A model generated the notes under the pieces. The model ran no database searches, was not told the DNA's origin, and saw only the letters and a program-made list of their open reading frames with translations. A stretch of DNA of 64,000 nucleotides from Bugula neritina. Lineage: Eukaryota > Animalia > Bryozoa. Positions 4,035 through 63,078 of the stretch are shown here, in pieces (within the stretch, counting starts at the first letter, position 1; each line of letters begins with the position of its first letter). The stretch lies in the NCBI GenBank assembly GCA_964035545.1, contig OZ037769.1, positions 17,142,633 through 17,206,632 on the forward strand. The letters run 5' to 3'. The position numbers and the translations under genes are program-made.

Positions 4035-4216
4035 ATGGGGTGCACTCTGAGTGCTGAGGAAAAGGAGGCTATGGAGAGAAATAAGGCTATAGAGAAAGGA
4101 CTGAAAGAGGACGGCATGCAAGCTGCTAAGGATATTAAACTACTGCTGCTCGGTGAGATGGCATCTGTTACTAGTACTAGTAGTACTAGTAGTAGTAATA
4201 GTAGCAGTAGTAGTAC

Positions 4217-4248
<32 letters not shown>

Positions 4249-4264
4249 CTAGCAGTAGTAGTAC

Positions 4265-4299
<35 letters not shown>

Positions 4300-4357
4300 C
4301 TAGTAGTAGTAGTAGTAGTTCTAGTAGTAGTTCTAGTAGTAGTAGTAGTAGTAGTTC

Positions 4358-4413
<56 letters not shown>

Positions 4414-5585: not shown

Positions 5586-5641
<56 letters not shown>

Positions 5642-6218
5642 CTCCCTCTCTCCCTCTCTCCCTCTCTCCCTCTCTCCCTCTCTCCCTCTCTCCCTCTCTC
5701 CCTCTCTCCCTCTCTCCCTCTCTCCCTCTCTCCCTCTCTCCCTCTCTCCCTCTCTCCCTCTCTCCCTCTCTCCCTCTCTCCCTCTCTCCCTCTCTCCCTC
5801 TCTCCCTCTCTCCCTCTCTCCCTCTCTCCCTCTCTCCCTCTCTCCCTCTCTCCCTCTCTCCCTCTCTCCCTCTCTCCCTCTCTCCCTCTCTCCCTCTCTC
5901 CCTCTCTCCCTCTCTCCCTCTCTCCCTCTCTCCCTCTCTCCCTCTCTCCCTCTCTCCCTCTCTCCCTCTCTCCCTCTCTCCCTCTCTCCCTCTCTCCCTC
6001 TCTCCCTCTCTCCCTCTCTCCCTCTCTCCCTCTCTCCCTCTCTCCCTCTCTCCCTCTCTCCCTCTCTCCCTCTCTCCCTCTCTCCCTCTCTCCCTCTCTC
6101 CCTCTCTCCCTCTCTCCCTCTCTCCCTCTCTCCCTCTCTCCCTCTCTCCCTCTCTCCCTCTCTCCCTCTCTCCCTCTCTCCCTCTCTCCCTCTCCCCTCT
6201 CTCCCTCTCTCCCTCTCT

Positions 6219-6312
<94 letters not shown>

Positions 6313-35800: not shown

Positions 35801-38361
35801 CACAGAAATGAGTTGTCCGGCACTCTACACGGGTTGACTCGGGTGAGGCGGTTCCAGCAGGACGACGCTCATATCTTCTGCATGCCCGAACAGGTGCGAC
35901 ATATTCCTGTCTTCCCTCCCTGTCTCTCCACCCCCTCTGTCTCTCTACCCCCTCTGTCTCTCCACCCCCTCTGTCTCTCCCCCCCCTCTGTCTCTCCACC
36001 CCTTCTGTCTCTCCCCCCCCCTCCTACTATCACATATTACTATCACATATTACTATCACATATTACTATCACGTATTACTATCACGTATTACTATCACGT
36101 ATTACTATCACGTATTACTATCACATATTACTATCACATATTACTATCATATATTGCCGGTAGATTGAGTCTGAAATGCAAGGCTGTTTCGACTTCATGG
36201 AGTATGTTTACGGAATATTTGGATTCACTTTTAAACTCAAACTGTCCACGAGACCCGAGAAGTACCTCGGAGACATCGAGGACTGGAACAAGGCCGAAGA
36301 GGTTAGTGTAGTCATGTGACTCAGTGTACTGAGAGTTGTTTGCCTGTTGCTAGGCGACCAGTAGGTATCACTGGTAGAGTTCTCTCCTCACCCTGTAACC
36401 TGTATTGTAGAGTCTAAGCAACAGTCTCAATGCCTCAGGACACCCCTGGGAGCTGAACCCCGGCGACGGGGCTTTCTACGGCCCTAAGATAGACATTACG
36501 ATACACGACGCGCTGAAGAGAGCTCACCAGTGTGCCACCATCCAGCTGGACTTTCAGCTGCCTTCTAGGTTTAATCTCCAGTACTCCAGGTGTCTACTTA
36601 CTCTATATATACTATATACTTACTCTGTATGTACTGTATACTTACACTGCATACTATATACTTACACTGTATACTATATACTTACACTGTATACTATATA
36701 CTTACACTGTCTACTATATACTTACACTGTATACTATATACTTACACTGTGTACTATATACTTACACTATACTATATACTTAGACTGTATACTATATACT
36801 TACACTGTATACTATATACTTACACTGTATACTATATACTTACACTGTATACTATATACTTACACTGTATACTATATACTTACACTGTATACTATATACT
36901 TACACTGTATACTATATACTTACACTGTATACTATATACTGTACACTATATACTTACACTGTATACTATATACTTACACTGTATACTATATACTTACACT
37001 GTATACTATATACTTACACTGTATACTATATACTTACACTGTATACTATATACTTAGACTGTATACTATATACTTACACTGTATACTATATACTTACACT
37101 GTATACTATATACTTACACTGTATACTATATACTTACACAGTGTACTATATACTTAGACTGTATACTATATACTTACACTGTATACTATATACTTACACT
37201 GTATACTATATACTTACACTGTATACTATATACTTACACTGTATACTATATACTTACACTGTATACTATATACTTACACTGTATACTATATACTTACACT
37301 ATATACTATATACTTACACTGTATACTATATACTTACACTGTATACTATATACTTACACTGTATACTATATACTTACACTGTGTACTATATACTTACACT
37401 GTATACTATATACTTACACTGCATACTATATACTTACACTGTATACTATATACTTACACTATATATACTGTATACTTAGTACTTAAACTGTATAATATGC
37501 TGCAGTGATGAAGTTGCGGTCACCAAGAGACCGGTCATGATACACAGAGCAGTCCTAGGCTCCGTAGAGAGGATGATAGCCATTCTTACAGAGAACTGCG
37601 CAGGGAAATGGTAAGTCAGCTCCGCCCCCCCCCCCCTACAACTTGACACGCCCCCCCTACAACTTGACACACCCCCCTACAACTTGACACGCCCCTCCCT
37701 AGCCCGATAGTCTAATTGTTGAATGTGTGTTGCAGGCCCTTCTGGTTGTCCCCGAGACAGGCTATTGTGATCCCGATAGCCGCACCCCTCAATGACTACG
37801 CGGAGGAGGTCAAGGCCAAACTGCACGATGCCGGCTACATGGCAGACGTGGACCTGGACGCAGGAAATACTCTGAACAAGAAAGTGAGGAATGCTCAGAT
37901 TGCTCAGTACAACTTCATACTCGGTGAGTGTGTTATATACTGTGTACTGTGTAAGTATTATATACTGTGTACTGTGTAAGTATTATATACTGTATACTGT
38001 GTAAGTATTATATACTGTATACTGTGTAAGTATTATATGCTGTATACTTTGTAAGTATTATATACTGTATACTGTGTAAGTATTATATACTGTATACTGT
38101 GTAAGTATTATATACTGTATACTGTGTAAGTATTATATACTGTATACTGTGTGTTATATACTTTGTGTTATATACTGTATGTGTTATATAAGACGTTGTA
38201 TGGTGTCTGTAGTGGTGGGGGAGAACGAAAGACAGGCTGGTACAGTCAATGTCCGCACTAGAGATAACAAGGTACACGGAGAGAGGTCTATAGATGACGT
38301 TCTCACCAGATTCAAACACTTGGCTGAGACTCACGAGAAAGACGCTGAGGAAAAGTTCTAG
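29868..38361 (+). CDS. TARS1: Cytoplasmic threonyl-tRNA synthetase, multi-exon
   Basis: TGS domain ([16 protein letters not shown]), [53 protein letters not shown] and anticodon-binding domain. The first exon at 29868 is less certain. Confidence 0.96.
30880..31025 (-). mobile_element. Degenerate tRNA-derived SINE remnant, ThrRS intron 1
   Basis: Minus strand TCATGGGTTCTAGTCCC...CCACTGGTGATGTCAAGAA resembles the element at 50825-51025. Confidence 0.4.
32323..32799 (+). repeat. 30-bp minisatellite x16 spanning a ThrRS acceptor junction
   Basis: Unit ACTGTAG|CTCAGTTTCACACAACTCTGTAC. Confidence 0.95.
32921..33810. repeat. (TAGTA/TAGTG/TATAG)n degenerate microsatellite, ThrRS intron
   Basis: Direct reading of the sequence. 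Confidence 0.95.
35448..35741 (+). repeat. 41-bp minisatellite x7 spanning a ThrRS acceptor junction
   Basis: Unit TATTACTGATGACAGAGTTGTATTATTTAG|TCTAATGTTTG. Confidence 0.95.
36600..37480. repeat. 20-bp minisatellite TACTTACACTGTATACTATA, ThrRS intron
   Basis: Direct reading of the sequence. Confidence 0.95.
37930..38190. repeat. 25-bp minisatellite with GTAAGT x8, last ThrRS intron
   Basis: GTAAGT every 25 bp from 37951 to 38126. Confidence 0.92.
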
Positions 38362-38513: not shown

Positions 38514-38852
38514 AATATGATATCTAGGCAATAGTGTCACAGAGACAGTGTATGCTGTGTCTACTTCCACACCAAATACTTTTAGCAAATGATATTCTGT
38601 AATTATTGTGATTTGACATTTACAAAATATACATGGTGAGCATAACTCCAACCAGCCCTCATTCATACTACAGATAATTATACTGGTTATAAATGAATAA
38701 AATGGACATAATATTTACATGAGTCAATAGATATACAATTACAAAGGAGACAACCCTAATTGGCCTCTAAACCCTGAAGTCACAATCTACAGTCTGGGTG
38801 TCCTGCTGACTCGACCCAGGGAGCCGAATGCTGTCGCTATGAGTCACCAGCC

Positions 38853-41850
38853 TCAGAACCCGTACTTGGCCTGAGTCTGCTGCCGGGTGGCTTTGTTGGC
38901 TGCCCACGTGTTCTTCAGCTCCAGTTCTCTCTCCTTCGCCTGCAACACAGTATAGAGTATAGAGAGCAGAAGTGCAGAGAGTATAGAGAGCAGAAGTGCA
39001 GAGAGTGTAGAGAGCAGAAGTGCAGAGAGTATAGAGAGCAGAAGTGCAGAGAGTGTAGAGAGCAGAAGTGCAGAGAGTATAGAGAGCAGAAGTGCAGAGA
39101 GTGTAGAGAGCAGAAGTGCAGAGAGTGTAGAGAGCAGAAGTGCAGAGAGTGTAGAGAGCAGAAGTGTAGAGAGTATAGAGAGCAGAAGTGCAGAGAGTAT
39201 AGAGAGCAGAAGTGCAGAGAGTATAGAGAGCAGAAGTGCAGAGAGTATAGAGAGCAGAAGTGCAGAGAGTATAGAGAGCAGAAGTGCAGAGAGTATAGAG
39301 AGCAGAAGTGTAGAGAGTATAGAGAGCAGAAGTGCAGAGAGTATAGAGAGCAGAAGTGCAGAGAGTATAGAGAGCAGAAGTGCAGAGAGTATAGAGAGCA
39401 GAAGTGCAGAGAGTATAGAGAGCAGAAGTGCAGAGAGTATAGAGAGCAGAAGTGCAGAGAGTATAGAGAGCAGAAGTGCAGAGAGTATAGAGAGCAGAAG
39501 TGCAGAGAGTATAGAGAGCAGAAGTGCAGAGAGTATAGAGAGCAGAAGTGCAGAGAGTGTAGAGAGCAGAAGTGCAGAGAGTATAGAGAGCAGAAGTGCA
39601 GAGAGTATAGAGAGCAGAAGTGCAGAGAGTGTAGAGAGCAGAAGTGCAGAGAGTATAGAGAGCAGAAGTGCAGAGAGTGTAGAGAGCAGAAGTGCAGAGA
39701 GTATAGAGAGCAGAAGTGCAGAGAGTATAGAGAGCAGAAGTGCAGAGAGTATAGAGAGCAGAAGTGCAGAGAGTATAGAGAGCAGAAGTGCAGAGAGTAT
39801 AGAGAGCAGAAGTGCAGAGAGTATAGAGAGCAGAAGTGCAGAGAGTATAGAGAGCAGAAGTGCAGAGAGTATAGAGAGCAGAAGTGCAGAGAGTATAGAG
39901 AGCAGAAGTGCAGAGGGTATAGAGAGCAGAAGTGCAGAGAGTATAGAGAGCAGAAGTGCAGAGAGTAACTGAGTAGGTGGTGTGGAAGGGAGACTTCAAA
40001 CTCACCTGGAACGCCAGGTAAGTGATCTGATGCTTTCTCTTCTGCTGACTAGAAGGTCCCTCCCCCTTCTTTCTGTGAGCAAAAGCTGCTGGATCCACCA
40101 CCTCTTCTGATATATTCTTAGTTAATTCTAGCTCGGATAATTTCTGATCATTTGAGTGGATGTCAATGAACTCTATAGCTTCTTTACCTCTTCCTTTCTT
40201 TCCTTGTAGCTTTAGAAACTGTAATAGTAAGTATAATACAGACAGGGTACACAGTAGGTCCCCTCTACATGTGGACCAGAAACAATGATAGATAAATACT
40301 CTATGTCTTCACACCAACTCTGTCATATCACAACACATGAATATGGGCAGCAGTACCTCCTTGTCATTTAATAAGTGGTGAACTTCATTAGCTTCTCTAA
40401 CTGCAGTCAGAGGTGTGTCATCCTCCCAGTTAGCTCCACCCCCAGTGTCATCCTCCCAGTTGGCTTCACCACTGACATCATCTGTCATGTTATATAAACT
40501 AGCGGCAGTAAGTCTGGCCGCCGGCTTCTCATCAGGTAAACTTTCATTGTGAAATGCACCATTAGCTAGGGTGGGGTCAGTTACCGTCCCTGTATGAGCC
40601 GAGTGAGATACAGGCTCTGAGTCTAACGAGAAGAAGTTGGTGGGAGGAGCTGAGAGCTGAGCAGATTCCGCCTCTTCCTCGCTATCGCTAGAATACTCCG
40701 TCGTTACTTTGTTCACCGAGCTGTTAGTCAGTGCAGGAGATTTCATTACTGCGCTGCCTCTGGACACTGATTGGCTGATGGGCAGTTTACTAGCAGACGG
40801 CTTACTAGCAGACGGCTTACTAGCAGAAGGCGCACTCTTGGTGAGAGTGTGAGGAATGAACTTCCTGCCGCTCTCTTTACCTCCACAGTTCCGTGGTGCC
40901 GGCAGACAGCCCAGAAACCCAGCGGCGCCAGAAAATGATTTCTGTTTCTTTGGAGTTGGCTCCTCCCCTTCAGAGTCCGAGTCCTACACATAGTTGATTT
41001 CTCTATACAATATTCCATTCAGTTTACTTTCTCGGTTTTATAAATTGCTTGCCATTGATAATTCTGAGATTTACAAATAATGTAAAGTTAAAGTAATGTA
41101 CAAAACAATATCATTTATCTCCCCATAAGTTTTCACGCTACACAACAAAACTTTAAGCTGAAAGCTGCATTGGCGTGGCAATTGCTTTTCTCTTTGCTTG
41201 TGAATAGAAAGAAACGGCTCCAATACACAACCTTCTTTACAGAATCTATCAATTTAATTTAAACTAACAATTATTACCTGCTAATACATAAACATGGACT
41301 AAGGGTGGTATTAGTTACCTGCTAGTATATAAATATAGACTAAGGGTGATATTAGTTACCTACTAGTATATAAACATGGGCTAAGGGTGATATTAGTTAC
41401 CTGCTAGTATATAAACATGGACTAAGGGTGGTATTAGTTACCTGCTAGTATATAAATATGGACTAAGGGTGATATTAGTTACCTGCTAGTATATAAACAT
41501 GGACTAAGGGTGATATTAGTTACCTGCAATGCAGGAACAGAAATCTGAATCTTGCCTTTGGCAGACAAAGTTTTCAGTTTGGCCAAACCCGCAGTAGCCA
41601 TTAGCTTAGGGGGTGGTTTTTCTAGAGGCGCATTTCCTAAAATCAGCAATAATTCTCAGATAAAACTTTTCTTAACACAGTCTTGAGGTTTCAAAACAAC
41701 TCAAGCTACCAAATCCCTACCATAGTTTGTTTTCTTTACAAAGTCTTCGAGCACATCATCAGAATTGGCATTTGTTGTTTTTGCTTCACTGACTTCCATT
41801 TCTTCATCACTCATGTCACTGTCTGAACCATAGTTAGCTACTAGTGCCAT
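38853..41850 (-). CDS. PRCC: PRCC (proline-rich mitotic checkpoint control factor), 5 coding exons
   Basis: N-terminus MALVANYGSDSD; C-terminus QKRKHQITYLAFQ|AKERELELKNTWAANKATRQQTQAKYGF. Confidence 0.93.
38953..39966. repeat. 24-bp minisatellite (~42 copies), last PRCC intron
   Basis: Unit AGAGAGCAGAAGTGCAGAGAGTAT. Confidence 0.97.
41272..41527 (-). repeat. 41-bp minisatellite (6 full units, 7 AG|GTAA junctions) spanning a PRCC donor
   Basis: Minus-strand unit GCAG|GTAACTAATATCACCCTTAGTCCATGTTTATATACTA. Confidence 0.93.
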
Positions 41851-45511: not shown

Positions 45512-48500
45512 TTATATGTCAATACCGATAGCACACATCTTGATCTGGAGGAACTCATCCATGCCATATTTACCACCTTCTCTACCGATACCGGACTGTT
45601 TGTAACCACCAAATGGCGTTTCAGCACTGCTAACTGTTGTGTCATTACAGCCAATAAGTCCAGCTTGTAAGGCCTCCATCACACGGTAACACTGGGACAG
45701 ATCACTGCTGTAGAAGTAACCTACATAAACATTTACATTTTTCATTTTCCAAAGAATACCAGTGGCCAATCCAGAAATATCTTTAGCAGAACAAAAATAG
45801 TGCCTTAGATTTAGCTCAATAACCATACAGGAAACCTATTCTTTGTTAAATCAAAACAGTTCTGTTTCACTATCTATCTTTGGAAAACTAAGTAAAGTAT
45901 TATTCTCTTGCGCGTCCAACTACCGACTAGTTAGCAGCTTCTTTACTGCTCCACGTTAGCAGCAGGTCACATGACAGCGCAGTCATGTGACAGGTAATGG
46001 AGGAACTTACTTGCCAGACCTCTTTCGGTATTATTGGCTTTTCTAATTACTTCTTCTTCATAGTTGAATCTACAAAGTATGAAAATTCTGATGTCACATG
46101 CACAGTTAGGACTTTAACAAAGCCTCTCAATACAGTGAAACTTAACTTACAGTACTGGGAAACTAAGCAAATAACAAACTTCTTGAACCTCATTGTCATA
46201 AATAGCATAGCTTACTTGATAACACAAATAACAGGTCCAAACACCTCTTGGTGTAGGATATCCATATCCTCTGTGATTCCAGTTAACAGAGTTGGCTGGA
46301 AATACAACTCCCCGACATCTGTAGCCCTAGAACCACCGCAGATAACCGTGGCTCCTTTACTCTTAGCATCATTGACCAGTCTCTCTACCTGCACACAGTG
46401 TATAGTGTGTAGTATCAGGGCGTTATACTATAATGTTACATTCACTGCTGGGTGAGTACATCAGATAAATAAGTAAGAGGGGGCAGGCTGATACCCTCTC
46501 GTACTGCTAGTACACAAGGAACACAGTCCAAACCCACCTTCTCCAACCCTCTGCTGTTTATAAGTGGTCCAATACTAGTCGTAGAATCCATAGGATCTCC
46601 CATTTTCAATGATTTAGTGAGTTTAGTCAGTTCTTCTACTGCCCTGTCATATATCCCTGTAAGTACATAGGAATATCATATACAGTTAACCACCACTACA
46701 AAGTCTACACTGTACATAGTCTGTTGTAGATCCCTTTAGGGACATAGGAAAAATCTATACAGTTAACCACCATTACGAAGTCACTCACCTTTTTGGATGA
46801 AGAAAAACTGAGGGCTGATACACTTTTGGCCACAATTTTCAAATTTTGAATGCAAAGTTCCTGAGATGACCTTGGAAAGGTCAGCTGAGTCGAAAATGAT
46901 AAACGGACAAAGTCCACCGAGCTCTAAACTTATCCTCTTGACTTGTTTTGCACACTGGGACATCAATAGCTACAGAATCAATAGATATCATGTAATAGCT
47001 GCATAGAATCTATATCTAATATATTGTAATAACTGCATAAGAATAAAGTGAATAGAAATTAATTTGAATTTTTCTGACTTACTTTACCAACTTCACAAGA
47101 ACCTGTGAAAGAGACGGTAGAGACTTTAGGGTCAGAAGAGAAAAGCTGTCCGATACCGGCAGCATTAGATCTGCTGCAGGAGACTATATTTAGAACACCT
47201 CTGGGGATCCCAGCTCTGTTAGCTAACTACAAGGAAAAACAGAATAAATACATGAATCTACTCTGAGATAGATAATATACTAGAGAGGATGTTAAGTTAA
47301 TTGTAGGTGCAGCTGGTGTTGTCCATGAGACAAACTCCCCAGTACACTCACTCATTACATTCATGGTTATATAATACATATCATAGTAGATAGGGTAGCC
47401 TCAGTACCTCTACTAATGCAGTTGTGGTGTACGGGGTGTCCTCTGGGTTCTTCACAATCACTGTGCAACCGGCAGCCAGAGCTGGACCTACTTTACGAGT
47501 CAGCATGGCTATTGGCACATTCCACTACAACAGCATTGAGTTTCTACATACACAGTGGGCGTGGTATACTCACAGTGGGCGTGGTATACTCACGGTGGGT
47601 GTGGTATACTCCAGTAGGTGTGGTATACACACAGTAGGAGTGGTATACTCACAGTAGGTGTGGTATACACACAGTGGGAGTGGTATACTCACAGTGGGCG
47701 TGGTATACACACAGTGGGTGTGGTATACACACAGTGGGCGTGGTATACTAACAGTGGGCGTGGTATACTCACAGTGGGCGCGGTATACTCACAGTGGGCG
47801 TGGTATACACACAGTATGAGTGGTATACTCACAGTGGCTGTGGTATACTCATAGTAGGCGTGGTATACTCACAAAGTTACTTACTGCTTATCTACACTGT
47901 AGAGCAAAACTCATAGACAGGTAGATTATAAAGGAGTGATTGCATCATATGGGGTAGATATTATTTATGGTAAACTCTTCCTATACTGTCTCCTTAATAC
48001 TCAACTAATGAGCTCACATTGTTCTACTTCTCAGATATCATGGAGTAGTGTAATCTCAATGTGCTAGTTTAGACAGAAATCATGAGCTCCTTAATAACTT
48101 GACGCTACAGCAAAAGCGCTTTGAAATATTTTTTTGAAACTATAAAGATGGACACAAGTATTTGAAATATACAAACTGGTAGAATGATTCCAGCTACTCC
48201 AATCGGCTCTTTTCTTACAATGGATCTTCTATTAGTTACGGGGAACTCAATTGTCTCCCCATACACTCTCCTAGCCTCAGCCGAATACCAGTCTAGAAAT
48301 GAACCTGCAAGTTTTGCTTCCTTTTTACTTTCGGCAATTGGCTTACCCTGGTAACAAAGTGCAATGGGTGAATATGTTGTGCAAGAAGTTTAAATGGTAG
48401 ATCAGTGATTATCTAGTCACATGAGTAACTTACATTCTCTTCTGTTAACATCTCTCCAAGTTCTGGAATGTTCTCCAATATTAAACTGTACCATTTGTAC

Positions 48501-49010
48501 AAGAGAGCACTTCTTTCCTGTAGAAATAGTAGTTTCACTTTGACACTAGAGTACTTTCACTTTGACACTAGAGTACTTTCACTTTAACACTAGAGTACTT
48601 TCACTTTGACACTAGAGTAGTTTCACTTTGACACTAGAGTAGTTTCACTTTGACACTAGAGTAGTTTCACTTTGACACTAGAGTAGTTTCACTTCATTAT
48701 ATAATATAAAGTCATACCTTAGCTGTCTTCTTACTCCATGGACCAAATGCCTCATAGGCAGCATCTACCGCTGCCTTCGTATCTTCTGCGTCCAGATCAT
48801 ACACCTCTCCAATGAGACTGCCATTCTTAGGGTTGAACACTACAAACCATACTTCTGTGTAAACAACTTTCACTTACTAACATGCTGTACAGTTTCTTGG
48901 TACAGTTACAGTAGTGTGACCTTATCCTGACCTTGAAACAGTTTCTCTGCTCTCCCTTTCACCCACTCTCCATTGATATATGACTCGGTCCTTCTCAGCC
49001 TCAAGGACAT
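45512..49010 (-). CDS. ALDH5A1: SSADH/ALDH5A1-like aldehyde dehydrogenase, copy A (divergent active site)
   Basis: SFTGS, LELGG, catalytic [24 protein letters not shown]; GT-AG exons homologous to copies B-D. Confidence 0.85.
47549..47873. repeat. 20-bp minisatellite CACAGTGGGCGTGGTATACT, SSADH copy A intron
   Basis: Direct reading; the unit contains a GGGCGTGG GC-box. Confidence 0.92.
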
Positions 49011-50386
49011 GGTTGTTTAGTGCCTATCAATAGAACTGCAACCAATAGAACTGCAACCAATAGAACCAAGGCTCCACAGCCTGCTGAGTGGTTGTGTGTT
49101 ACAACACAGTTGTTATAAAATAAGTTGGTTGGTAAACAGTCCACATACCCAATTGACATATGCCTTCTGTTAAGCCACAAGAGAGTCTAGCAAAATAATA
49201 ACCAAAGAGCCTGTGTTTAGATGAGAAACCTGGGAGAAGTTATGTTTGAGTGAGACTCTCAACCCACACTCCAAACCAGACTTCATAGACATTTAAGTAA
49301 CTTTTTGCACTCAAGTACGTGCATTGCAGATCTTTTGTAAAAGCTCAAATTTCACCCTAACCTACACACTAATTGAAATGCAATGTTGAAAACAAACTAA
49401 AACTCCTAATTAAACTCAATAAAATATTAGGGAGAGCTTACTAGCATTAGCATCTATACATATCTATACATACCTGTAGAACACACATGCACTATCACGA
49501 TGAAAAAGAAAGCATGCCTTCAAGATGTGGTTAAATTGCCTCACTAAGACAACATACTTAGTGTAGCCAATCAGAGGCATGGGGGTAGCAGCATTCTACG
49601 CTTCCACATCAACTGGTATATTCTACATCAACTGGTATATGAAGGTAGTGCTCGGTGGAGGAAATTATTTGCAGTTATTTTTTGATCCGAAATTAGAGTA
49701 AAAGAAAAAAGGGCAAAAGTTAGGACTAGTTTTTTCAGATGGCTTATTATCATCTTTGAAAGTATGTAATAAGAACAACTGTTGTCCCACTAGTTATAGC
49801 ACACAGCGTACTTCATCCTTTAACATTCTGATCGCTATATATACTTCTTCAACGTATAGGTGTCGGTCACATGAATGACCCAGTGTGACCTAGTTACTTG
49901 GGGTAGAGCATAAGGGTGATAGCTACTGTGTCTTGCCTTGACAATAGTCATAGCTCTGGTCAAAACAAGTTGAACAACTGGTTGAAAGGCACATATAGCA
50001 CATATCTGAGAAGTTAATCTCGGCTATATAAATCTTACAGTATTGTGGTGTGACACATCACAATATCAACTATTTAACTTTCTTTATTATTTTATAAATA
50101 TTAGAAAAAAGTAAACATTCATATCAGAGCAAATTTAGTGAATTCAGTAATTTTGTTCCACTGCACGTTCCCAGAAAGATCACTTTTCCGCATAAATAAA
50201 GAAAAACTTTATTATCAACTGTAAAGCAATGCTAAAAGATATTTTTAAATCATTTATAAATAAAAAAATGCCATTTTTAAATGAGACTGTGAACTAAGCT
50301 GAATTAGTAACTAAAGCGTTGAACAAGTTTGATTATAAAACTTTTGTTAGACTGCTCACGGATTGACTAACAAAAACCCAACTACT

Positions 50387-53300
50387 TTATAAGTCAATAC
50401 CGATAGCACACATCTTGATCTGGAGGAACTCATCCATGCCATATTTACCACCTTCTCTACCGATACCGGACTGTTTGTAACCACCAAATGGGCTTTCGAT
50501 GCCTCCAAGTGTTGTATCATTACAGCCAATAAGTCCAGCTTGTAAGGCCTCCATCACACGGTAACACTGGGACAGATCACTGCTATAGAAGTAACCTACG
50601 GAGATACAGAACACACAATGCAAGTAGCGGACATTTAGAAGACAATGTGGGTGTGGCTAAAACAGGAAATAGTGGGAGGTGAAACTTACTAGCCAAGCCT
50701 CTCTCTGAGTCATTAGCTCTTCTGATAGCCTCTTCTTCAGTTTTAAATCTTCAACAATAGAATAAATATTGCGAGGTAGGAGTACAGACACTTCTGGCAA
50801 ATCAAGTTATTCTCAAGCAAGTATATGGTTACCATCCTGCGAGAAAACCCCTGATGGAAGGCGACTTTTGTTAAAGCGGGCTAAGGACTTATTTAAATGA
50901 CGCACAGGAACAATTATGACTGGATGCTCTTCCTAACATCACCAATGGCCTTGGTTTGGGCTCGAACCCATGACTTGGTGTTTACTAGACAAACGCTCTA
51001 ACCCCTAGACCACGGCTGCTCCCTGCCAACTCAACTTATTACTATGTATTTATATTTCCTAAACAGTTGAGTAATAAAGTAAAATCAGTCACGAAGTGTT
51101 GACCAATCAGAACTCACTTAATCACATTGATGACAGGTCCAAACACCTCTTGGTGTAGGATATCCATATCCTCTGTGATTCCAGTTAACAGAGTTGGCTG
51201 GAAATACAACTCCCCGACATCTGTAGCCCTAGAACCACCGCAGATAACCGTGGCTCCTTTACTCTTAGCATCATTGACCAGTCTCTCTACCTGCACACAG
51301 TATATAGTGTGTAGTATCAGGGCTTTATACTATAATGTTACATTCACTGCTGGATGAGTACATCAGATAAATAAGTAAGAGGGGGCAGGTTGATGCCCAC
51401 CCGTACTGCTAGTACACAAGGAACACAGTCTAAACCCACCTTCTCCAACCCTCTGCTGTTTATAAGTGGTCCAATACTAGTCGTAGAATCCATTGGATCT
51501 CCCATCTTCAATGATTTAGTGAGTTTAGTCAGTTCTTCTACTGCCCTGTCATATATCCCTGTAAGTACATAGGAATATCATATACAGTTAACCACCACTA
51601 CAAGGCCTGCACTGTACATATTCTGTCATATTGTGACAGTGTTAGTCATGTGACAGTGGTAGTCATGTGAAAGACTGAAAATATTACCTTCCTGAATAAA
51701 GAAATTCTGAGCACTGATGCAAGCTTGACCACAGTTCCGGAACTTTGCAAATAGAGTTCCTGAGACGACCTTGGAAAGGTCAGCCGAGTCGAAGACTATG
51801 AGAGGAGCCAAACCACCGAGCTCTAAACTTATTCTCTTCACTTCTACTGCACACTGAGACATGAGTAGCTGTAATACATAATATAATATAATACATAATA
51901 TAATATAATATAACACAGTAATATAATATAATGCAGTAATATAATATAATACAGTAATATAATATAATATAACACAGTAATATAATATAATACAGAAAGT
52001 AATATAATACAGTAATATAATATAATGCAGTAATATAATATAATAATATTCTGAGACTTACTTTACCAACTTCACAGGAACCTGTGAAAGAGACGGTAGA
52101 GACTTTAGGGTCAGAAGAGAAAAGCTGTCCGATGCCGGCAGCATTAGATCTGCTGCAGGAGACTATATTTAGAACACCTTTGGGAATCCCAGCTCTGTTA
52201 GCTAGCTGTAACATAGTAGCATGGTGAGGACATGTAATAGCACATAGTACACTCTATAATATACAACTGGTAGCCTCAGTACCTCAACTAAAGCTGTGGG
52301 GATGTACGGGGTGTCTTCTGGGGACTTCACAACAACAGTACATCCGGCAGCCAGAGCTGGACCTACTTTACGAGTCAGCATACCAGCTGGGAAGTTCCAC
52401 TGAAACATATCAAAGTGAGTCAATGAATATATAGTCACAGTACCATGTAGTGAATATATAGTCACAGTATCATGGACTGAAAGGAGTTTCATTAGGAATA
52501 ATCATTACGGTAGTTGAGAGTTTCACACCCACCGGCACTATGATTCCAGCTACTCCAATCGGCTCTTTTCTTATAATGGATCTTCTATTAGTTACGGGGA
52601 ACTCAATTGTCTCCCCATACACTCTCCTAGCCTCAGCTGAGTACCAGTCTAGAAATGAGGCTGCATACATCATCTCCCCCTTCCCTTCAGCTAATGGCTT
52701 TCCCTGGGAATGTAATGTGACAGTCTAAAGCTGTGAAGATGTGCTGTATGTATGCTGTGTTACGTCTAGTCACTTTACAGTAGATGTACAGTCTACTTAC
52801 TTTATTACTCAACTTACATTCTCTTCTGTTAACATCTCTCCAAGTTCTGGAATGTTCTCTAATATTAAACTGTACCATTTGTACAAGAGAGCACTTCTTT
52901 CCTGTAGAAATAGTAGTTTCACTTTGACACTAGAGTAGTTTCACTTTGACACTAGAGTACTTTCACTTTGACACTAGATTAGTTTCACTTTGACACTAGA
53001 GTAGTTTCACTTTGACACTAGAGTACTTTCACTTTGACACTAGAGTAGTTTCACTTTGACACTAGAGTAGTTTCACTTTGACACTAGAGTACTTTCACTT
53101 TGACACTAGAGTAGTTTCACTTTGACACAAGAGTAGTTTCACTTTGACACTAGAGTAGTTTCACTTCATTATATAATATAAAGTCATACCTTAGCTGTCT
53201 TCTTACTCCACGGACCAAATGCCTCATAGGCAGCATCTACCGCTGCCTTCGTATCTTCTGCGTCCAGATCATACACCTCTCCAATGAGACTGCCATTCTT

Positions 53301-53481
53301 AGGGTTGAACACTACAAACCATACTTCTGTGTAAACACATTCACTTACTAACAAGCTGTACACTTTCTTGGTACAGTTACAGTAGTGTAACCTTATCCTG
53401 ACCTTGAAACAGCTTCTCTGCTCTCCCTTTCACCCACTCTCCATTGATATACGACTCAGACCTTCTCAGACTCTCTGACAT
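50387..53481 (-). CDS. ALDH5A1: SSADH/ALDH5A1-like, copy B
   Basis: [35 protein letters not shown]; ATG of MSESLRR at 53481. Confidence 0.88.
50825..51025 (-). mobile_element. tRNA-derived SINE in an SSADH copy B intron
   Basis: Minus strand A-box TGGTCTAGGGG and B-box GGTTCGAGCCC, followed by non-tRNA body GGTGATGTTAGGAAGAGCATCCAGTCATAA; absent from the homologous intron of copies C and D. Confidence 0.7.
52912..53166. repeat. 22-bp VNTR AGTAGTTTCACTTTGACACTAG (also at ~48530, ~57597 and ~62593)
   Basis: Same intron in all four SSADH copies with different copy numbers. Confidence 0.93.
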
Positions 53482-56400
53482 GATTGTTGAAGTGTGCAAG
53501 TCTTTACTCAGTACTTATAGTCATATGTTTAACTTCTTACACAGACTAGTGTGTGCACAGAGATAAACAATGGAGATCCTTCTATGTTCTTAGATAGTCA
53601 AAGTTTCTTGAAATATCAGCATAAGATATAGTGGCTAGAAATATACAAGTTTGAGCAATGCCACCACACCAAGTATGTACTTGGTAAAGTCCACAGTCTA
53701 AAGCCTCCTTCACTGAGTACACACTACCTTAATGAACTGACTGTGAGTTATGAAGTGCAGCTGACCATGTGACCTCTAGTAGACCTTGTGACACGCCCAC
53801 TTTAACAAACCAATAATCAAGTAAATATGAATACAAGTCGACTACCCTGGGAAAGTTTAAGTTGAGCTAATGGTTGGTACACAGATAATAGATAGCCTAA
53901 GTGACACTCCCTTCACAGAAATTTTTGCTAATGAGTACATAACCTGTGCCTAGAAGAACAAGGAAAAGTTCTAGAATCTCAGACCGCATCTATATTAATA
54001 CAGCCATGAGTTGATATACAAGACTAGATATACTACATGTAAGTGATGGAATCCAAGCAGAGGATGTTATTTAAATATAAACACTAATAGGAAATTTCTG
54101 AGTGTATTGATTAGAAGAGTTGTGTGTCCTTGTAAACTGCTGATACTTTATATATCAATCTTCTCACCAATTAAATTGCTATTCTGACTCATACGCTGCA
54201 GCTCCTGTGCTGACATAACAGTGAAGTGACTTCTGCACACTGAGATGGTTTGATAGTACAGTTGGTAGACGTATGCAGCTAAAATACTCGCATCTCATTG
54301 GTTGGGGAGAGAAAGATGAAGAGACACAATTTTATGAACTAAACTCAGAGTCACTAAAACCCTGACAGTTTATGTTCAGCCATGTTAAATTGAGTTTGCA
54401 ACGTTGTGGCATAACATAATCTACTAGTTCAAGTTGTTTGGCACTTTATTAATTTACATCTGTCTGTGTTATTAAAAAGTCAGATGAGAACTCTCTTTAG
54501 TATAAACCAGTTTATTATCACAACAAAGGGAGTGGATTTAGAAAAAGCAGCTACAGTAATCTACACACATACTCTGGGGTTGTAGACAATAATGGAACTC
54601 AACGTATAGAAGTTTATCTCAGACTAACTGAGAGAAACTTGGACTTTGATAGTTGAGGAGTAAATACTGTAGACGTACCACCAGTAGATGGTGAGAAAGA
54701 TTAATTTGGTAAAAAACAGGAAATTGAGTTAAATATAATATCTACACTAAAAGGTAATAGTGCTTCACTAGTAAGTAAAGTAACTCATAGTTCTGAACTG
54801 GACCGTGATTTCAGTTAAATTAGTGACTAAAGCTTCAAGCCTCATTATAAAAGTGTTGATAACCTGGTGACAAGCAAATTACAACAACCCAACTAGTTTA
54901 TATGTCAATACCGATAGCACACATCTTGATCTGGAGGAACTCATCCATGCCATATTTACCACCTTCTCTACCGATACCAGACTGTTTGTAACCACCAAAT
55001 GGAGTTTCAGCACTGCTAACTGTTGTGTCATTACAGCCAATAAGTCCAGCTTGTAAGGCCTCCATCACACGGTAACACTGGGACAGATCACTGCTGTAGA
55101 AGTAACCTACGCAGATACAGAACACACAATGCAAGTAGCGGACATTTAGAAGATAGTGTGGGTGTGGCTAAAACAGGAAACAGGGGGAAGTGAAACTTAC
55201 TAGCCAAGCCTCTCTCTGAGTCATTAGCTCTTCTGATAGCTTCTTCTTCAGTTTTAAATCTTCAACAATAGAATAAATATTGTGAGGTTGGAGGAGAGAC
55301 ACTTCTGGTAAGAGTAGAGCTGATTATATAAGAACATTACGGAGATGGTAACAGTGGTCATGAAGGTATAAGTGGATAAGTTTTAAATTTAGTTTAATCT
55401 TGAAAAGTATTTTTTTAAAAACATCCTTATATGGCACCAATTCATTATGTCATAAATATTAAATCATTTTGATAAACTTACAATGCGATGAGTATGATTG
55501 TATTACTATTTGTAAGAATAAGTCTCTCCCGATACATGCTGGTCACTTATTACTCTGCACATCATACACGAGGAGTTATGTTCTTCTCAAAATATCAGTC
55601 ACCAAGTGTTGACCAATGAGAACTCACTTAATCACATTGATGACAGGTCCAAACACCTCTTGGCGTAGGATATCCATATCCTCTGTGATTCCAGTTAACA
55701 GAGTTGGCTGGAAATACAACTCCCCGACATCTGTAGCCCTAGAACCACCGCAGATAACCGTGGCTCCTTTACTCTTAGCATCATTGACCAGTCTCTCTAC
55801 CTGCACACAGTATATAGTGTGTAGTATCAGGGCTTTATACTATAATGTTACATTCACTGCTGGATGAGTACATCAGATAAATAAGTAAAAGGGGGCAGGC
55901 TGATGCCCTCTCGTACTGCTAGTACACAAGGAACACAGTCCAAACCCACCTTCTCCAACCCTCTGCTGTTTATAAGTGGTCCAATACTAGTCGTAGAATC
56001 CATTGGATCTCCCATCTTCAATGATTTAGTGAGTTTAGTTAGTTCTTCTACTGCCCTGTCATATATCCCTGTAAGTACATAGGAATATCATATACAGTTA
56101 ACCACCACTACAAAGTCTGCACTGTATATAGTCTGTCATATTGTGATAATGTTAGTCACGTGAAAGACTGAAAATATTACCTTCCTGAATAAAGAAATTC
56201 TGAGCACTGATGCAAGCTTGGCCACAGTTACGGAACTTTGCAAATAGAGTTCCCGAGACGACCTTGGAAAGGTCAGCCGAGTCGAAGACTATGAGAGGAG
56301 CCAAACCACCGAGCTCTAAACTTATTCTCTTCACTTCTACTGCACACTGAGACATGAGTAACTGTAATACATAATATAATATAATGCAGTAATATAATAT

Positions 56401-59377
56401 AATACAGTAATATAATATAATATAATACAGTAATATAATATAATATAATACAGTAATATAATTTAATATAGTAATATAAAACAGTAATACAATATAATAT
56501 AATACAGTTAGTAATATAATACAGTGATATAATATAATATAATATAATAATATAATATAATATAGTAATATAATACAAGTAATATAATATAATACAGTAA
56601 TATAATATAACACAGTAATATAATATAATACAGAAAGTAATATAATATAATACAGTAATATAATATAATAATAATATTCCAAGACTTACTTTACCAACTT
56701 CACAAGAACCTGTGAAAGAGACGGTAAAGACTTTAGGGTCAGAAGAGAAAAGCTGTCCGATGCCGGCAGCATTAGATCTGCTGCAGGAGACTATATTTAG
56801 AACACCTCTGGGAATCCCAGCTCTGTTAGCTAGCTGTAACATAGTAGCATGGTGAGGACATATAATGGCATATAGTATACTCTATAATATACAACTGGTA
56901 GCCTCAGTACCTCTACTAAAGCTGTGGGGATGTACGGGGTGTCTTCTGGGGACTTCACAACAACAGTGCATCCGGCAGCCAGAGCTGGACCTACTTTACG
57001 AGTCAGCATACCAGCTGGGAAGTTCCACTGAAACATATCAAAGTGAGTCACTGAGTATATAGTCACAGTATCATGTAGTGAGTATATATAGTCACAGTAC
57101 CATGTAGTGAGTATATAGTCACAGTACCATGTAGTGAGTATATAGTCACAGTATCATGGACCGAAAGGTGTATTATTATGAATAATCATTACGGTAGTTT
57201 AGAGTTTCACACCCACCGGCACTATGATTCCAGCTACTCCAATCGGCTCTTTTCTTATAATGGATCTTCTATTAGTTACGGGGAACTCAATTGTCTCCCC
57301 ATACACTCTCCTAGCCTCAGCTGAATACCAGTCTAGAAATGAGGCTGCATACATCATCTCCCCCTTCCCTTCAGCTAATGGCTTTCCCTGGGAATGTAAT
57401 GTGACAGTCTAAAGCTGTTAAGATGTGCTGTATGTATGCTGTGTTATGTCTAGTCACTTTAGAGTAGATGTACAGTCTACTTACTTTATTACACAACTTA
57501 CATTCTCTTCTGTTAACATCTCTCCAAGTTCTGGAATGTTCTCCAATATTAAACTGTACCATTTGTACAAGAGAGCACTTCTTTCCTGTAGAAATAGTAG
57601 TTTCACTTTGACACTAGAGTAGTTTCACTTTGACACTAGAGTAGTTTCACTTCATTATATAATATAAAGTCATACCTTAGCTGTTTTCTTACTCCACGGA
57701 CCAAATGCTTCATAGGCAGCATCTACCGCTGCCTTCGTATCTTCTGCGTCCAGATCATACACCTCTCCAATGAGACTGCCATTCTTAGGGTTGAACACTA
57801 CAAACCATACTTCTGTGTAAACACATTCACTTACTAACAAGCTGTACACTTTCTTGGTACAGTTACAGTAGTGTAACCTTATCCTGACCTTGAAACAGCT
57901 TCTCTGCTCTCCCTTTCACCCACTCTCCATTGATATATGACTCGGACCTTCTCAGACTCTCTGACATGATTGTTGAAGTGTGCAAGTTTTTACTCAGTAC
58001 TTATAGTCATATGTTTAACTTCTTACACAGACTAGTGTGTGCACAGAGATAAACAATGGAGATCCTTCTATGTTCTTAGATAGTCAAAGTTTCTTGAAAT
58101 ATCAGCATAAGATATGGTGGCTAGAAATATACAAGTTTGAGCAATGCCACCACACCAAGTATGTACTTGGTAAAGTCCACAGTCTAAAGCCTCCTTCACT
58201 GAGTACACACTACCTTAATGAACTGACTGTGAGTTATGAAGTGCAGCTGACCATGTGACCTCTAGTAGACCTTGTGACACGCCCACTTTAACAAACCAAT
58301 AATCAAGTAAATATGAATACAAGTCGACTACCCTGGGAAAGTTTAAGTTGAGCTAATGGTTGGTACACAGATAATAGATAGCCTAAGTGACACTCCCTTC
58401 ACAGAAATTTTTGCTAATGAGTACATAACCTGTGCCTAGAAGAACAAGGAAAAGTTCTAGAATCTCAGACCGCATCTATATTAATACAGCCATGAGTTGA
58501 TATACAAGACTAGATATACTACATGTAAGTGATGGAATCCAAACAGAGAATGTTATTTAAATATAAACACTGATAGGAAATTTCTGAGTGTATTGATTAG
58601 AAGAGTTGTGTGTCCTTGTAAACTGCTGATACTTTATATATCAATCTTCTCACCAATTAAATTGCTATTCTGACTCATACGCTGCAGCTCCTGTGCTGAC
58701 ATAACAGTGAAGTGACTTCTGCACGCTGAGAAGGTTTAATAGTACCGTTGGTAGACGTATGCAGCTAAAATACTCGCATCTCATTGGTTGGGGAGAGAAA
58801 GATTAAGAGACACAACTTTATGAACTAAACTCAGAGTCACTAAAACCCTGACTGTTTATGTTCAGCCATGTTAAATTGACTGCAATGTTGTGGCATAACA
58901 TAATTGTTCAAGTTGTTTGGCACTTTATTGATTTACATCTGTCTGTGTTATTAAATACTCAGATGAGAACTCTCTTTAGTATAAACCAGTTTATTATCAC
59001 AACAAAGGGAGTGGATTTAGAAAAAGCAGCTACAGTAATCTACGCACATATACTGGGGTTGTAGACAATAATGCAACTCAACGTATAGAAGTTTATCTCA
59101 GACTAACTGAGAGAAACTTGGACTCTGTTAGTTGAGGAGTAAATACTGTAGACGTACCACCAGTAGATGGTGAGAAAGATTAATTTGGTAAAAAACAGGA
59201 AATTGAGTTAAATATAATATCTACACTAAAAGGTAATAGTGCTTCACTAGTAAGTAAAGTAACTCATAGTTCTGAACTGGACCGTGATTTCAGTTAAATT
59301 AGTGACTAAAGCTTCAAGCCTCATTATAAAATTGTTGATAACCTGGTGACAAAGCAAATTACAACAACCCAACTAGT
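53482..59377. repeat. Near-identical intergenic spacers B-C (53482-54897) and C-D (57968-59377); ~4.48-kb tandem duplication unit
   Basis: Spacers align almost base for base; stop codons of C and D are 4480 bp apart. Confidence 0.93.
54898..57967 (-). CDS. ALDH5A1: SSADH/ALDH5A1-like, copy C
   Basis: Same exon set and motifs as copies B and D; ATG at 57967. Confidence 0.88.
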
Positions 59378-62300
59378 TTATATGTCAATACCGATAGCAC
59401 ACATCTTGATCTGGAGGAACTCATCCATGCCATATTTACCACCTTCTCTACCGATACCAGACTGTTTGTAACCACCAAATGGAGTTTCAGCACTGCTAAC
59501 TGTTGTGTCATTACAGCCAATAAGTCCAGCTTGTAAGGCCTCCATCACACGGTAACACTGGGACAGATCACTGCTGTAGAAGTAACCTACGCAGATACAG
59601 AACACACAATGCAAGTAGCGGACATTTAGAAGATAGTGTGGGTGTGGCTAAAACAGGAAACAGGGGGAAGTGAAACTTACTAGCCAAGCCTCTCTCTGAG
59701 TCATTAGCTCTTCTGATAGCCTCTTCTTCAGTTTTAAATCTTCAACAATAGAATAAATATTGCGAGGTTGGAGTAGAGACACTTCTGGTAAGAGTAGAGC
59801 TGATTATACAAGAACATTACGGAGATGGTAACATGGTCATGAAGGTATAACTGGATAAGTTTTAAATTTAATTTAATCTTGAAAAGAATTTTTCTAAAAA
59901 CGCCCTTATATGGCACCAATTCATTATGTCATAAATACTAAATCATTTTGATAAAATTACAACGGGATGAGTATGATTGTATTACTATTACTTAGTATTT
60001 GCCAGAATAAGTCTCTCCCAATACATGCTAGTCACTTATTACTCTGCATATCATACACGAGGAGTTATGTTCTCCTCAAAGTGTCAGTCACCAAGTGTTG
60101 ACCAATGAGAACTCACTTAATCACATTGATGACAGGTCCAAAAACCTCTTGGCGTAGGATATCCATATCCTCTGTGATTCCAGTTAACAGAGTTGGCTGG
60201 AAATACAACTCCCCGACATCTGTAGCCCTAGAACCACCGCAGATAACTGTGGCTCCTTTACTCTTAGCATCATTGACCAGTCTCTCTACCTGCACACAGT
60301 ATATAGTGTGTAGTATCAGGGCTTTATACTATAATGTTACATTCACTGCTGGATGAGTACATCAGATACATCAGTAAGAGGGGGCAGGCTGATGCCCACC
60401 CGTACTGCTAGTACACAAGGAACACAGTCTAAACCCACCTTCTCCAACCCTCTGCTGTTTATAAGTGGTCCAATACTAGTCGTAGAATCCATTGGATCTC
60501 CCATCTTCAATGATTTAGTGAGTTTAGTCAGTTCTTCTACTGCCCTGTCATATATCCCTGTAAGTACATAGGAATATCATATACAGTTAACCACCACTAC
60601 AAAGTATACACTGTACATAATCTGTCATATTGTGACAGTGTTAGTCATGTGAAAGACTGAAAATATTACCTTCCTGAATAAAGAAATTCTGAGCACTGAT
60701 GCAAGCTTGGCCACAGTTACGGAACTTTGCAAATAGAGTTCCCGAGACGACCTTGGAAAGGTCAGCCGAGTCGAAGACTATGAGAGGAGCCAAACCACCG
60801 AGCTCTAAACTTATTCTCTTCACTTCTACTGCACACTGAGACATGAGTAGCTGTAATACATAATATAATATAATACATAATATAATACATAATATAATAT
60901 AATACAGTAATATAATATAATACAGTAATATAATTTAATACAGTAATATAATATAATATAATACAGTAATATAATATAATATAATACAGTAATATAATAT
61001 AATTCAGTAATATAATATAATACAGTAATATAATACAATATAGTAATATAATATAATACAGCAATATAATATAATATAATGCAGTAATATAATATAATAT
61101 AATACAGTAATATAATATAATGCAGTAATATAATATAATATAATGCAGTAATATAATATAATATAATGCAGTAATATAATATAATAATAATTTTCTAAGA
61201 CTTACTTTACCAACTTCACAAGAACCTGTGAAAGAGACGGTAGAGACTTTAGGGTCAGAAGAGAAAAGCTGTCCGATGCCGGCAGCATTAGATCTGCTGC
61301 AGGAGACTATATTTAGAACACCTTTGGGAATCCCAGCTCTGTTAGCTAGCTGTAACATAGTAGCATGGTGAGGACATGTAATAGCACATAGTACACTCTA
61401 TAATATACAACTGGTAGCCTCAGTACCTCTACTAAAGCTGTGGGGATGTACGGGGTGTCTTCTGGGGACTTCACAACAACAGTACATCCGGCAGCGAGAG
61501 CTGGGCCTACTTTACGAGTCAGCATACCAGCTGGGAAGTTCCACTGAAACATATCAAAGTGAGTCAGTGAGTATATAGTCACAGTACCATGTAGTGAATA
61601 TATAGTCACAGTAACATGTAGTGAGTATATAGTCACAGTATCATGTAGTGAGTATATAGTCACAGTATCATGTAGTGAGTATATAGTCACAGTAACATGT
61701 AGTGAGTATATAGTCACAGTATCATGTAGTGAGTATATAGTCACAGTATCATGTAGTGAGTATATAGTCACAGTATCATGTAGTGAGTATATAGTCACAG
61801 TACCATGTAGTGAGAGTTTGGAGTGAGAGTCAACGTGTTAGTATCTGTGACAGTAACATGAAACTATTATGAAATACTTAACATATTTTCATCTGCCTGC
61901 ATTTCATTTCATAAACTTATCTAAACATGAGGTCAGCAGGTTGGAGGCTGACAGGGCTCTAGTTTCTACTGGCAGCTCACAGATTATATATATTACAGCA
62001 ATGACCTTAGCAACTAGGGTAAGAAATGTGAACATAATGGTAAACGTATTCATAGACACTATAAAAGAGAGACAACTCCCAGATACTGTCTGTACTAAGC
62101 TGTATGTTCTACTTGGCACTCTGTATGTATTATAGTACAGCAAGGTAGTCACTTGACTATAAAGAGTTTCATTATGAATGATCATTACGGTAGTTGAGAG
62201 TTGCACACCCACCGGCACTATGATTCCAGCTACTCCAATCGGCTCTTTTCTTATAATGGATCTTCTATTAGTTACGGGGAACTCAATTGTCTCCCCATAC

Positions 62301-63078
62301 ACTCTCCTAGCCTCAGCCGAATACCAGTCTAGAAATGAGGCTGCATACATCATCTCCCCCTTCCCTTCAGCTAATGGCTTTCCCTGGGAACGTAATGTGA
62401 CAGTCTAAAGCTGTGAAGATGTGCTGTATGTATGCTGTGTTACGTCTAGTCACTTTAGAGTAGATGTACAGTCTACTTACTTTATTACACAACTTACATT
62501 CTCTTCTGTTAACATCTCTCCAAGTTCTGGAATGTTCTCCAATATCAAACTGTACCATTTGTACAGGAGAGCACTTCTTTCCTGTAGAAATAGTAGTTTC
62601 ACTTTGACACTAAAGTTTTTTCACTTTGATATTAGAGTAGTTTCACTTTGATATTAGAGTAGTTTCACTTTGCCACTAGAGTAGTTTCACTTTGACACTA
62701 GAGTAGTTTCACTTTGACACTAGAGTAGTTTCACTTCATTATATAATATAAAGTCATACCTTTGCTGTCTTCTTACTCCACGGACCAAATGCCTCATAGG
62801 CAGCATCTACCGCTGCCTTCGTATCTTCTGCGTCCAGATCATACACCTCTCCAATGAGACTGCCATTCTTAGGGTTGAACACTACAAACCATACTTCTGT
62901 GTAAACACATTACCTTACTAACAAGCTGTACAGTTTCTAGGTACAGTTACAGTATTGTGACCTTATCCTGACCTTGAAACAGCTTCTCTGCTCTTCCTTT
63001 CACCCACTCTCCATTAATATATGACTCGGACCTTCTCAGACTCTCTGACATGATTGTTGAAGTGTGCAAGTTTTTACT
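59378..63078 (-). CDS. ALDH5A1: SSADH/ALDH5A1-like, copy D (may have a further upstream exon not located)
   Basis: Same motifs. The first visible exon opens at a strong acceptor (TTTGTTCCTACAG) and reads [16 protein letters not shown] in frame; ATG at 63051. Confidence 0.88.

Follow-up and report, generated by a model that had tools for sequence, protein, structure and literature searches.

We analysed a window of 64,000 nucleotides (nt) from the bryozoan Bugula neritina, which sits on a 17.7-Mb contig (OZ037769.1, positions 17,142,633 to 17,206,632) of a 216-Mb assembly. Gene models were built by tblastn with E. coli GabD (from locus L001), followed by a GT/AG junction search. This approach identified four intact tandem genes of the succinic semialdehyde dehydrogenase (SSADH) or ALDH5 type of aldehyde dehydrogenase (ALDH), all of which lie on the minus strand and are referred to here as copies A to D. 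Copy A (coding sequence 49010..45512) is a divergent ALDH5/SSADH paralogue with an intact open reading frame, A-specific exons that are found in RNA-seq contigs and an orthologue on a metagenome contig (L015). Copy B (53481..50387) is a canonical-type SSADH gene with a private LGGIES island in exon 11. Copies C (57967..54898) and D (63051..59378) are also of the canonical type, and D, which has SSADH matches among both PDB chains and NCBIfam models, served as the reference copy. A first-pass annotation of the window had proposed four SSADH copies and quoted motifs from them; all of these motifs were present, and the four genes are complete.

Each copy consists of 11 exons whose lengths (79, 122, 84, 171, 117, 144, 181, 119, 173, 59 and 209 nt) are the same in all four. 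Every one of the 40 introns is of the GT-AG type, each gene has an ATG start and a TAA stop and encodes 485 amino acids, and there are no indels between copies. Copies C and D differ by only two amino acids (K200R and S227F) with a synonymous divergence (dS) of 0.05, and the mutual dS among B, C and D is only 0.05–0.08. The start ATG is homologous in the four copies (49010, 53481, 57967 and 63051) and aligns to residue 52 of the human precursor, with in-frame stop codons just upstream in A, B and C. A mitochondrial presequence was absent from all four models, in which the 5′ ends are predicted and the proteins begin at the start point of bacterial GabD. Either the usual import route would not apply to the SSADHs of this bryozoan, or an upstream exon may have been missed in B, C and D.

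Assignment to the ALDH5 family was consistent among the exons tested. PF00171, the ALDH superfamily domain, is precomputed on exon fragments of this gene type. Family searches were carried out exon by exon, not with joined spliced proteins, and each exon tested matched ALDH chains and NCBIfam ALDH models. When exons 4, 5, 7 and 11 were compared with PDB chains by phmmer, the best matches were human SSADH (2W8N/2W8P) and E. coli GabD (3JZ4). The top NCBIfam match for the same four exons of both A and D was TIGR01780 (SSADH) or PRK11241, with the copy A exons scoring 1–8 bits below those of D. Exon 7 and PF00171 were used to search the 216-Mb assembly for further SSADH-type genes, and the 10 kb flanking the window at each end were searched as well. 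Both searches were negative. The genome search hit genes of other ALDH families and contigs of ciliate contaminants and nothing else, and the idea of a fifth copy, or of a canonical ALDH5A1 gene in another place, was therefore rejected. The contaminant genes (C15:86663-88012, C310:8621-9685 and C284:22820-24058) are near-continuous and contain many in-frame TAA and TAG codons; being of ciliate origin, they are not bryozoan ALDH genes.

Residues were mapped onto the human enzyme by exon-by-exon phmmer alignment, which was gap-free from residue 96 to 481 and in which bryozoan residue r corresponds to residue r+3 of the 2W8N chain and r+51 of the precursor. This offset places the catalytic Cys at human position 340 and the general base at 306. 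As the first-pass annotation had stated for the catalytic Cys and Glu, these residues are kept in every copy together with the oxyanion Asn (C289, E255 and N154, equivalent to human C340, E306 and N205), as are the equivalents of Arg213, Lys214 and Glu515. Arg213, Arg334 and Ser498 hydrogen-bond the carboxylate of succinic semialdehyde, the E. coli equivalents being R164, R283 and S445, according to PMC11681614, PMC12041015, PMC10599462 and PMC2823781, in which Kim et al. 2009 is cited. All three ligands are present in C and D, and one is missing from each of A and B. Copy A keeps Arg213 and Ser498, and its L108, V155 and E283 correspond to Y159L, F206V and R334E. Further replacements in A include G155K, A311C and a Lys for the T339 equivalent directly before the catalytic Cys; the residues that A has replaced at these six sites are near-invariant in the family. 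Copy A also gains Lys near the pocket, at 104, 107 and 288. In copy B, G447 and G448 correspond to S498G and S499G. Thus the four pocket substitutions that had been proposed earlier, R334E, F206V and Y159L in A and S498G in B, were borne out by the gap-free alignment to human 2W8N. Phe206 adjoins the oxyanion Asn and corresponds to the ALDH2 tunnel residue Phe170. In the papers searched, no statement was found that places Tyr159 and Phe206 along the SSADH pocket, and the pocket role given to them here comes from ALDHs in general.

The change at position 334 lies in codon 283 of A (46838..46840, minus strand), which is GAA (Glu); the corresponding codon is CGT or CGG in B to D, and GGA (Gly) in a second lineage of this gene that is described below. 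The 149 closest homologues of A exon 7 among 1.84 billion cluster representatives carry Arg at 334 in 98% of cases and Glu in no case. Moreover, the residues that A carries at 311, 330, 334, 339 and 345 were found in none of these 149 sequences, indicating that the pocket of A is unusual. Lys214 and Cys342 are ALDH5-specific (PMC11681614). Lys214 is kept in all four copies, and the equivalent of Cys342 is Ser in all four as well as in the gene of a related animal (contig L012), from which it follows that the two-cysteine redox switch is absent in this clade. Copies C and D have all of the SSADH features tested except the presequence and Cys342.

Copy A differs from B, C and D at 41 of 485 residues, and 35 of these 41 differences are in exons 4, 5, 7 and 10. 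The first-pass annotation had held that this divergence is concentrated on substrate-pocket residues. We found instead that it is block-wise rather than residue-wise and that it includes silent sites and introns. Among codons that specify the same residue, synonymous differences occurred in 43 of 140 in exons 4, 5, 7 and 10 versus 21 of 304 elsewhere. Silent and replacement rates rise and fall together across exons (Spearman 0.94). In the pooled diverged exons dS was 0.75 and the nonsynonymous divergence (dN) was 0.143, giving a dN/dS ratio (ω) of 0.19, versus a dS of 0.109 and a dN of 0.011 in the remaining exons. The distribution of synonymous differences between A and D over the exons is uneven to a degree far beyond chance (chi2 74, p 6e-12).

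The same pattern was apparent in the alignment of exons (E) and introns (I). Outside three blocks, copy A is about 97–99% identical to B, C and D. By segment, identity of A to B/C/D is 90–100% over E1-I1-E2-I2-E3, 97% in exon 6 and 94–98% over E8-I8-E9, and exon 11 of A is 99% identical to those of C and D. The first of the three diverged blocks, I3-E4-I4-E5-I5 (47227..48433, minus strand), is 50–86% identical to B/C/D, with exons at 80–86% and introns at about 50–65%, and contains G155K, Y159L and F206V. The second, I6-E7-I7 (46657..47082, minus strand; 55–80%), contains the catalytic loop with E283 (R334E) and K288; its exon 7 is 75% identical to that of B/C/D, and 23 of 39 synonymous sites differ. 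The third block is I9-E10-I10 (45721..46215, minus strand; 55–70%), in which identity falls to about 70% in exon 10 and to about 55% in the introns on both sides of it. This block-wise divergence of silent sites and introns identifies copy A as an older paralogue in which, to judge from the alignment, at least four stretches have been replaced by sequence of the B/C/D type through non-allelic gene conversion. Sharing of variants among copies is also in conflict from site to site: residue 200 is Arg in A and C and Lys in B and D, residue 385 is His in A and B and Arg in C and D, and exon 11 is alike in A, C and D and different in B. These reticulate variants indicate that the same conversion process operates among the copies.

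The next question was whether copy A is functional. The 525 nt of its coding sequence that escaped conversion have a dS of 0.75, yet the 485-codon reading frame and all 20 splice sites are intact. The related animal's gene on L012, an ENA metagenome contig that was found via the exon fragment P0002, was used as an outgroup. This contig shows a single SSADH gene, which has a canonical pocket and exons 3–10 of lengths identical to those of the bryozoan copies, and third-position identity indicates that the split between A and B/C/D is younger than the split from this relative. We also observed that the first ~60 nt of exon 4 are present three times in L012 with a spacing of 182 nt (1904-2330), as two decayed partial copies in intron 3 preceding the real exon. 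With L012 as outgroup, 19 replacements in the unconverted exons were assigned to the A branch versus 4 to the B/C/D branch (p 0.0026), whereas polarising with E. coli GabD alone gave 14 versus 7, which was not significant. The unconverted exons are exactly the four that are best conserved between D and L012, with amino acid identities of 0.74–0.82 versus 0.43–0.72 for the others (Mann-Whitney p 0.016, the minimum attainable for four versus five exons). Conversion that is neutral and limited by homology predicts the opposite ranking of exons, and the result thus fits selection against conversion events that would reset exons 4, 5, 7 and 10.

Further evidence came from a word search with exon 7 of A, which led to the fragment P0154 on the JGI contig L015. 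Collinearity between L015 and A extends to the A-specific introns, which are 87–93% identical; we conclude that L015 carries the A orthologue of a diverged lineage. In exons 4, 5 and 7, A and its L015 orthologue differ by 11 silent and 6 replacement changes, corresponding to an ω of 0.16 (P 3e-4 against neutrality). These data demonstrate purifying selection on A between the two lineages.

RNA-seq contigs were examined in run X1 with a matching threshold of 93%, below which the non-coding DNA of X1 would fall. One contig covered the 181 nt of A exon 7 at ~97% identity; its aligned part ends no more than 2 nt from both exon borders, and the contig runs on for 28 and 127 nt. A second contig covered A exon 5 and ended exactly at the exon border. 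Such ends are expected where A-specific exons are joined to exons that are common to B, C and D. Spliced joints in X1 were found at the predicted introns 1 and 2 (in A coordinates) and 9 (in B coordinates), in contigs that were of the B/C/D type or ambiguous as to copy; none was listed in an A-specific contig of this run. The variants of L015 were also present in X1, which identifies this run as coming from the second lineage.

We consider it likely that these are four functional ALDH5-family genes shaped by duplication and ongoing conversion, and that A is a specialised and probably active ALDH that acts on a different aldehyde. According to this model, the tandem array would have formed by duplication, with non-allelic gene conversion continuing between the copies. 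Oxidation of succinic semialdehyde is most likely the task of copies B, C and D, since the assembly searches yielded no SSADH-type gene outside the array. Conversion from the B/C/D type would have overwritten exons 1–3, 6, 8–9 and 11 of A while sparing exons 4–5, 7 and 10, which are predicted to build the substrate tunnel and the catalytic loop. The resulting enzyme would have lost the canonical clamp on succinic semialdehyde, and conversion tracts that reset the spared exons are probably eliminated by selection. With respect to the earlier proposal that the copies are neofunctionalised, what holds for A is that the gene is intact, constrained and represented by RNA contigs of its own and that canonical pocket residues have been lost; a significant signal of positive selection is not part of this picture.

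Several observations weigh against this model. No test gave a signal of positive selection, and the ω of the diverged blocks is low (~0.19). The ratio of nonsynonymous to synonymous changes by parsimony was 32:24 on the A branch versus 9:16 on the B/C/D branch (ω ~0.4 versus 0.17), with a Fisher p of 0.10. The residue at position 334 is not the same in the two A lineages (Glu versus Gly), possibly a sign that constraint on this site is relaxed. As found here, the L015 orthologue is without the first 48 nt of exon 6, and an alternative acceptor would preserve the frame but replace a conserved segment; this lineage may have a defective orthologue, or the short metagenome contig may contain a misjoin within a stretch that the copies share. 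The k-mer depth of the A-specific contigs was ~10 versus 220–320 for B/C/D-type contigs, which as a rough guide is ~25-fold lower. In addition, since X1 is from a diverged lineage, empty introns alone are no proof against DNA carry-over, which may have contributed to its contigs. Finally, escape of the four exons from conversion could be self-reinforcing, in that the diverged exons have become too unlike their counterparts to convert and selection is not needed. The suggestion of the first-pass annotation that the differences are maintained against conversion is supported in so far as the spared exons are the four most conserved between species, which fits such selection.

A broader version of the model is that the array forms a panel of substrate ranges, in which A and, independently, B have been remodelled in their pockets for other aldehydes and are held so by selection against steady homogenisation by the canonical copies beside them. 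Copy A would then found a bryozoan-specific ALDH5 subfamily with new substrate binding, a Lys beside the catalytic Cys and no Arg334. We put this forward tentatively and hold it to be somewhat doubtful.

A different explanation is that A is a redundant duplicate that is drifting to loss under relaxed constraint, such that its blocks are simply too diverged to convert and its pocket changes are damage. The excess of A-derived replacements (19 versus 4), the loss of family-invariant residues, the alternation of Glu and Gly at residue 283, the low depth of the A-specific RNA contigs and the exon 6 lesion of the L015 orthologue would all be accounted for by drift. However, drift does not readily explain a reading frame and 20 splice sites that are intact at this level of silent divergence, nor the comparison of the two A lineages, in which ω is 0.16. 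Copy A also has its catalytic Cys, Glu and Asn and Arg213 in place, and conservation is highest in the unconverted exons, opposite to what neutral, homology-limited conversion predicts. We thus regard drift to loss as unlikely and favour a specialised, functional copy A.

Outside exon 11, copy B is of the canonical type. Its island (codons 443–451, 50492..50518, minus strand) contains V446L, S447G, S448G, A449I and T451S, which together give the LGGIES motif. Eleven of the 14 differences between B and D in exon 11 fall within these 27 nt (Fisher p 6e-9), and the exon is otherwise 98% identical. All three bases differ at codon 449. The clustering and the change at this codon suggest that the stretch was replaced in one event, or that it is a tiny relic of older sequence, rather than stepwise drift. 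No ectopic donor was identified, as the genome held no other match to a 23-mer of the island with up to 2 mismatches and the window held no shared word of 12 nt or more. Nor was the island present in nine related exon 11 fragments from a 5.8-billion-protein collection, most of which keep Ser-Ser in T[VI]SSAETPFGG-like motifs.

That the island is a second adaptive pocket change, held against conversion, seems to us improbable, and less credible than the drift proposed for A. The density of substitutions within an otherwise conserved exon and the alteration of the Ser498 carboxylate ligand speak for it. However, no X1 contig was found on exon 11 of B (depth 0), although contigs can miss rare variants and X1 represents another lineage, and the island has neither a relative nor a donor in the collections searched. 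The L012 gene has Asn and Thr at 498 and 499, indicating that Ser498 is no absolute requirement in this clade, and the island may be of recent origin and either neutral or slightly deleterious. Of the suggestion that B is neofunctionalised, S498G itself is real, whereas neither X1 nor the nine fragments provided evidence of expression or conservation.

Least likely of all, and barely credible on present evidence, is the earlier proposal that A has been redirected towards cationic or amino aldehydes by the charge reversal R334E: although Glu occupies the Arg334 site in this genome and an acidic residue occurs there in none of the 149 closest homologues, the site is Gly in X1 and L015 with the other 59 exon 7 residues identical, so that the conserved feature of the A type is loss of Arg334 and not an acidic side chain, and with three Lys residues gained and Arg213 kept the pocket region does not appear to be obviously negative.

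Inspection of the array and its surroundings revealed several additional features. Intron 9 of B contains a very high-copy element (50800-51200), with a summed k-mer depth of ~300,000–600,000 in both runs versus ~100–400 around it. This element has many loose ends and alternative joints and is absent from intron 9 of C and D; it is probably an insertion resembling a short interspersed element, and a tRNA-like origin was rejected when ARAGORN found no tRNA. Minisatellites are present in introns of the four copies (47551-47873, 48528-48694, 52912-53166, 56365-56677, 60860-61191 and 61566-61814), with unit numbers that vary between copies. The units are 22 nt in intron 2, where there are 2.6 to 11.6 of them depending on the copy, 20 or 27 nt in intron 4, and AT-rich 18 or 23 nt in intron 6. 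Because of these minisatellites, long spurious repeat reading frames arise. Other long simple or minisatellite tracts in the window are at 4035-4445, 5450-6370, 12276-12671, 27650-28380, 32238-33980, 36590-37480 and 38767-40101, and they include, at position 4035, a Ser-rich run immediately behind a first exon of G-protein alpha-like type. Synteny with L012, where the SSADH gene is followed by one for ribulose-phosphate epimerase, was considered and rejected, since the window does not contain that epimerase gene.

ALDH5 is usually treated as a single conserved enzyme of the γ-aminobutyric acid shunt in animals. If A has a new substrate, a lineage-specific branch would be added to ALDH5, and the array would be a clean natural experiment on a change of specificity at the Arg213/Arg334/Ser498 clamp under ongoing conversion. 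The ~20 derived residues of A provide a defined set for mutagenesis. The processes documented here, namely tandem duplication, exon-restricted conversion and paralogue divergence, are known ones and involve no new mechanism; the case is instructive rather than unprecedented.

Among known enzymes, human mitochondrial SSADH (ALDH5A1; PDB 2W8N-2W8R) was the best or near-best structural match for each exon tested, with a colinear alignment that is free of indels over residues 96–481. Copies B, C and D keep the equivalents of Asn205, Arg213, Lys214, Glu306, Arg334, Cys340, Ser498 and Glu515, except that B is without Ser498. In contrast to the human gene, there are four tandem copies in the bryozoan, the models have no N-terminal presequence and the redox-switch partner Cys342 is Ser in each; copy A further differs from the human enzyme in the loss of Arg334, Tyr159 and Phe206, and copy B in the loss of Ser498. 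E. coli GabD (an NADP-dependent SSADH, PDB 3JZ4) is 48% identical to D over its full length and belongs to the same length class with the same start point. Its ligand triad (R164, R283 and S445) is conserved in C and D. Unlike the bryozoan genes, the bacterial GabD gene occurs once, has no introns and is part of the gab operon, and the equivalent of GabD R283 is replaced in copy A.

Substrate changes in this family have taken place at the same ligand positions. In sulfolactaldehyde dehydrogenases these positions changed along with the substrate, as in RlGabD (Arg171/Arg289) and the B. megaterium SlaB (His/Asn) (PMC10599462). Copy A resembles these enzymes in that it alters one of the three positions together with tunnel-lining aromatics, whereas the sulfolactaldehyde dehydrogenases belong to distant, mostly bacterial lineages. 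None of the 149 closest homologues shows the combination of A, with Glu or Gly at 334, a Lys preceding the catalytic Cys and a Cys at 311. A metagenomic SSADH-like protein (P0043) is without all three ligands (R213Q, R334I and S498V) and also carries Y159I, which indicates that relatives with a remodelled pocket exist. The primate L/M opsins are conversion mosaics of tandem paralogues in which the specificity-determining exons are kept distinct. As in the bryozoan array, their introns and most exons are homogenised while the function-defining exons stay diverged; the opsins are another protein family, and the functional difference between the bryozoan copies is a predicted one. Exon-restricted conversion mosaics that spare the function-defining exons are a known pattern.

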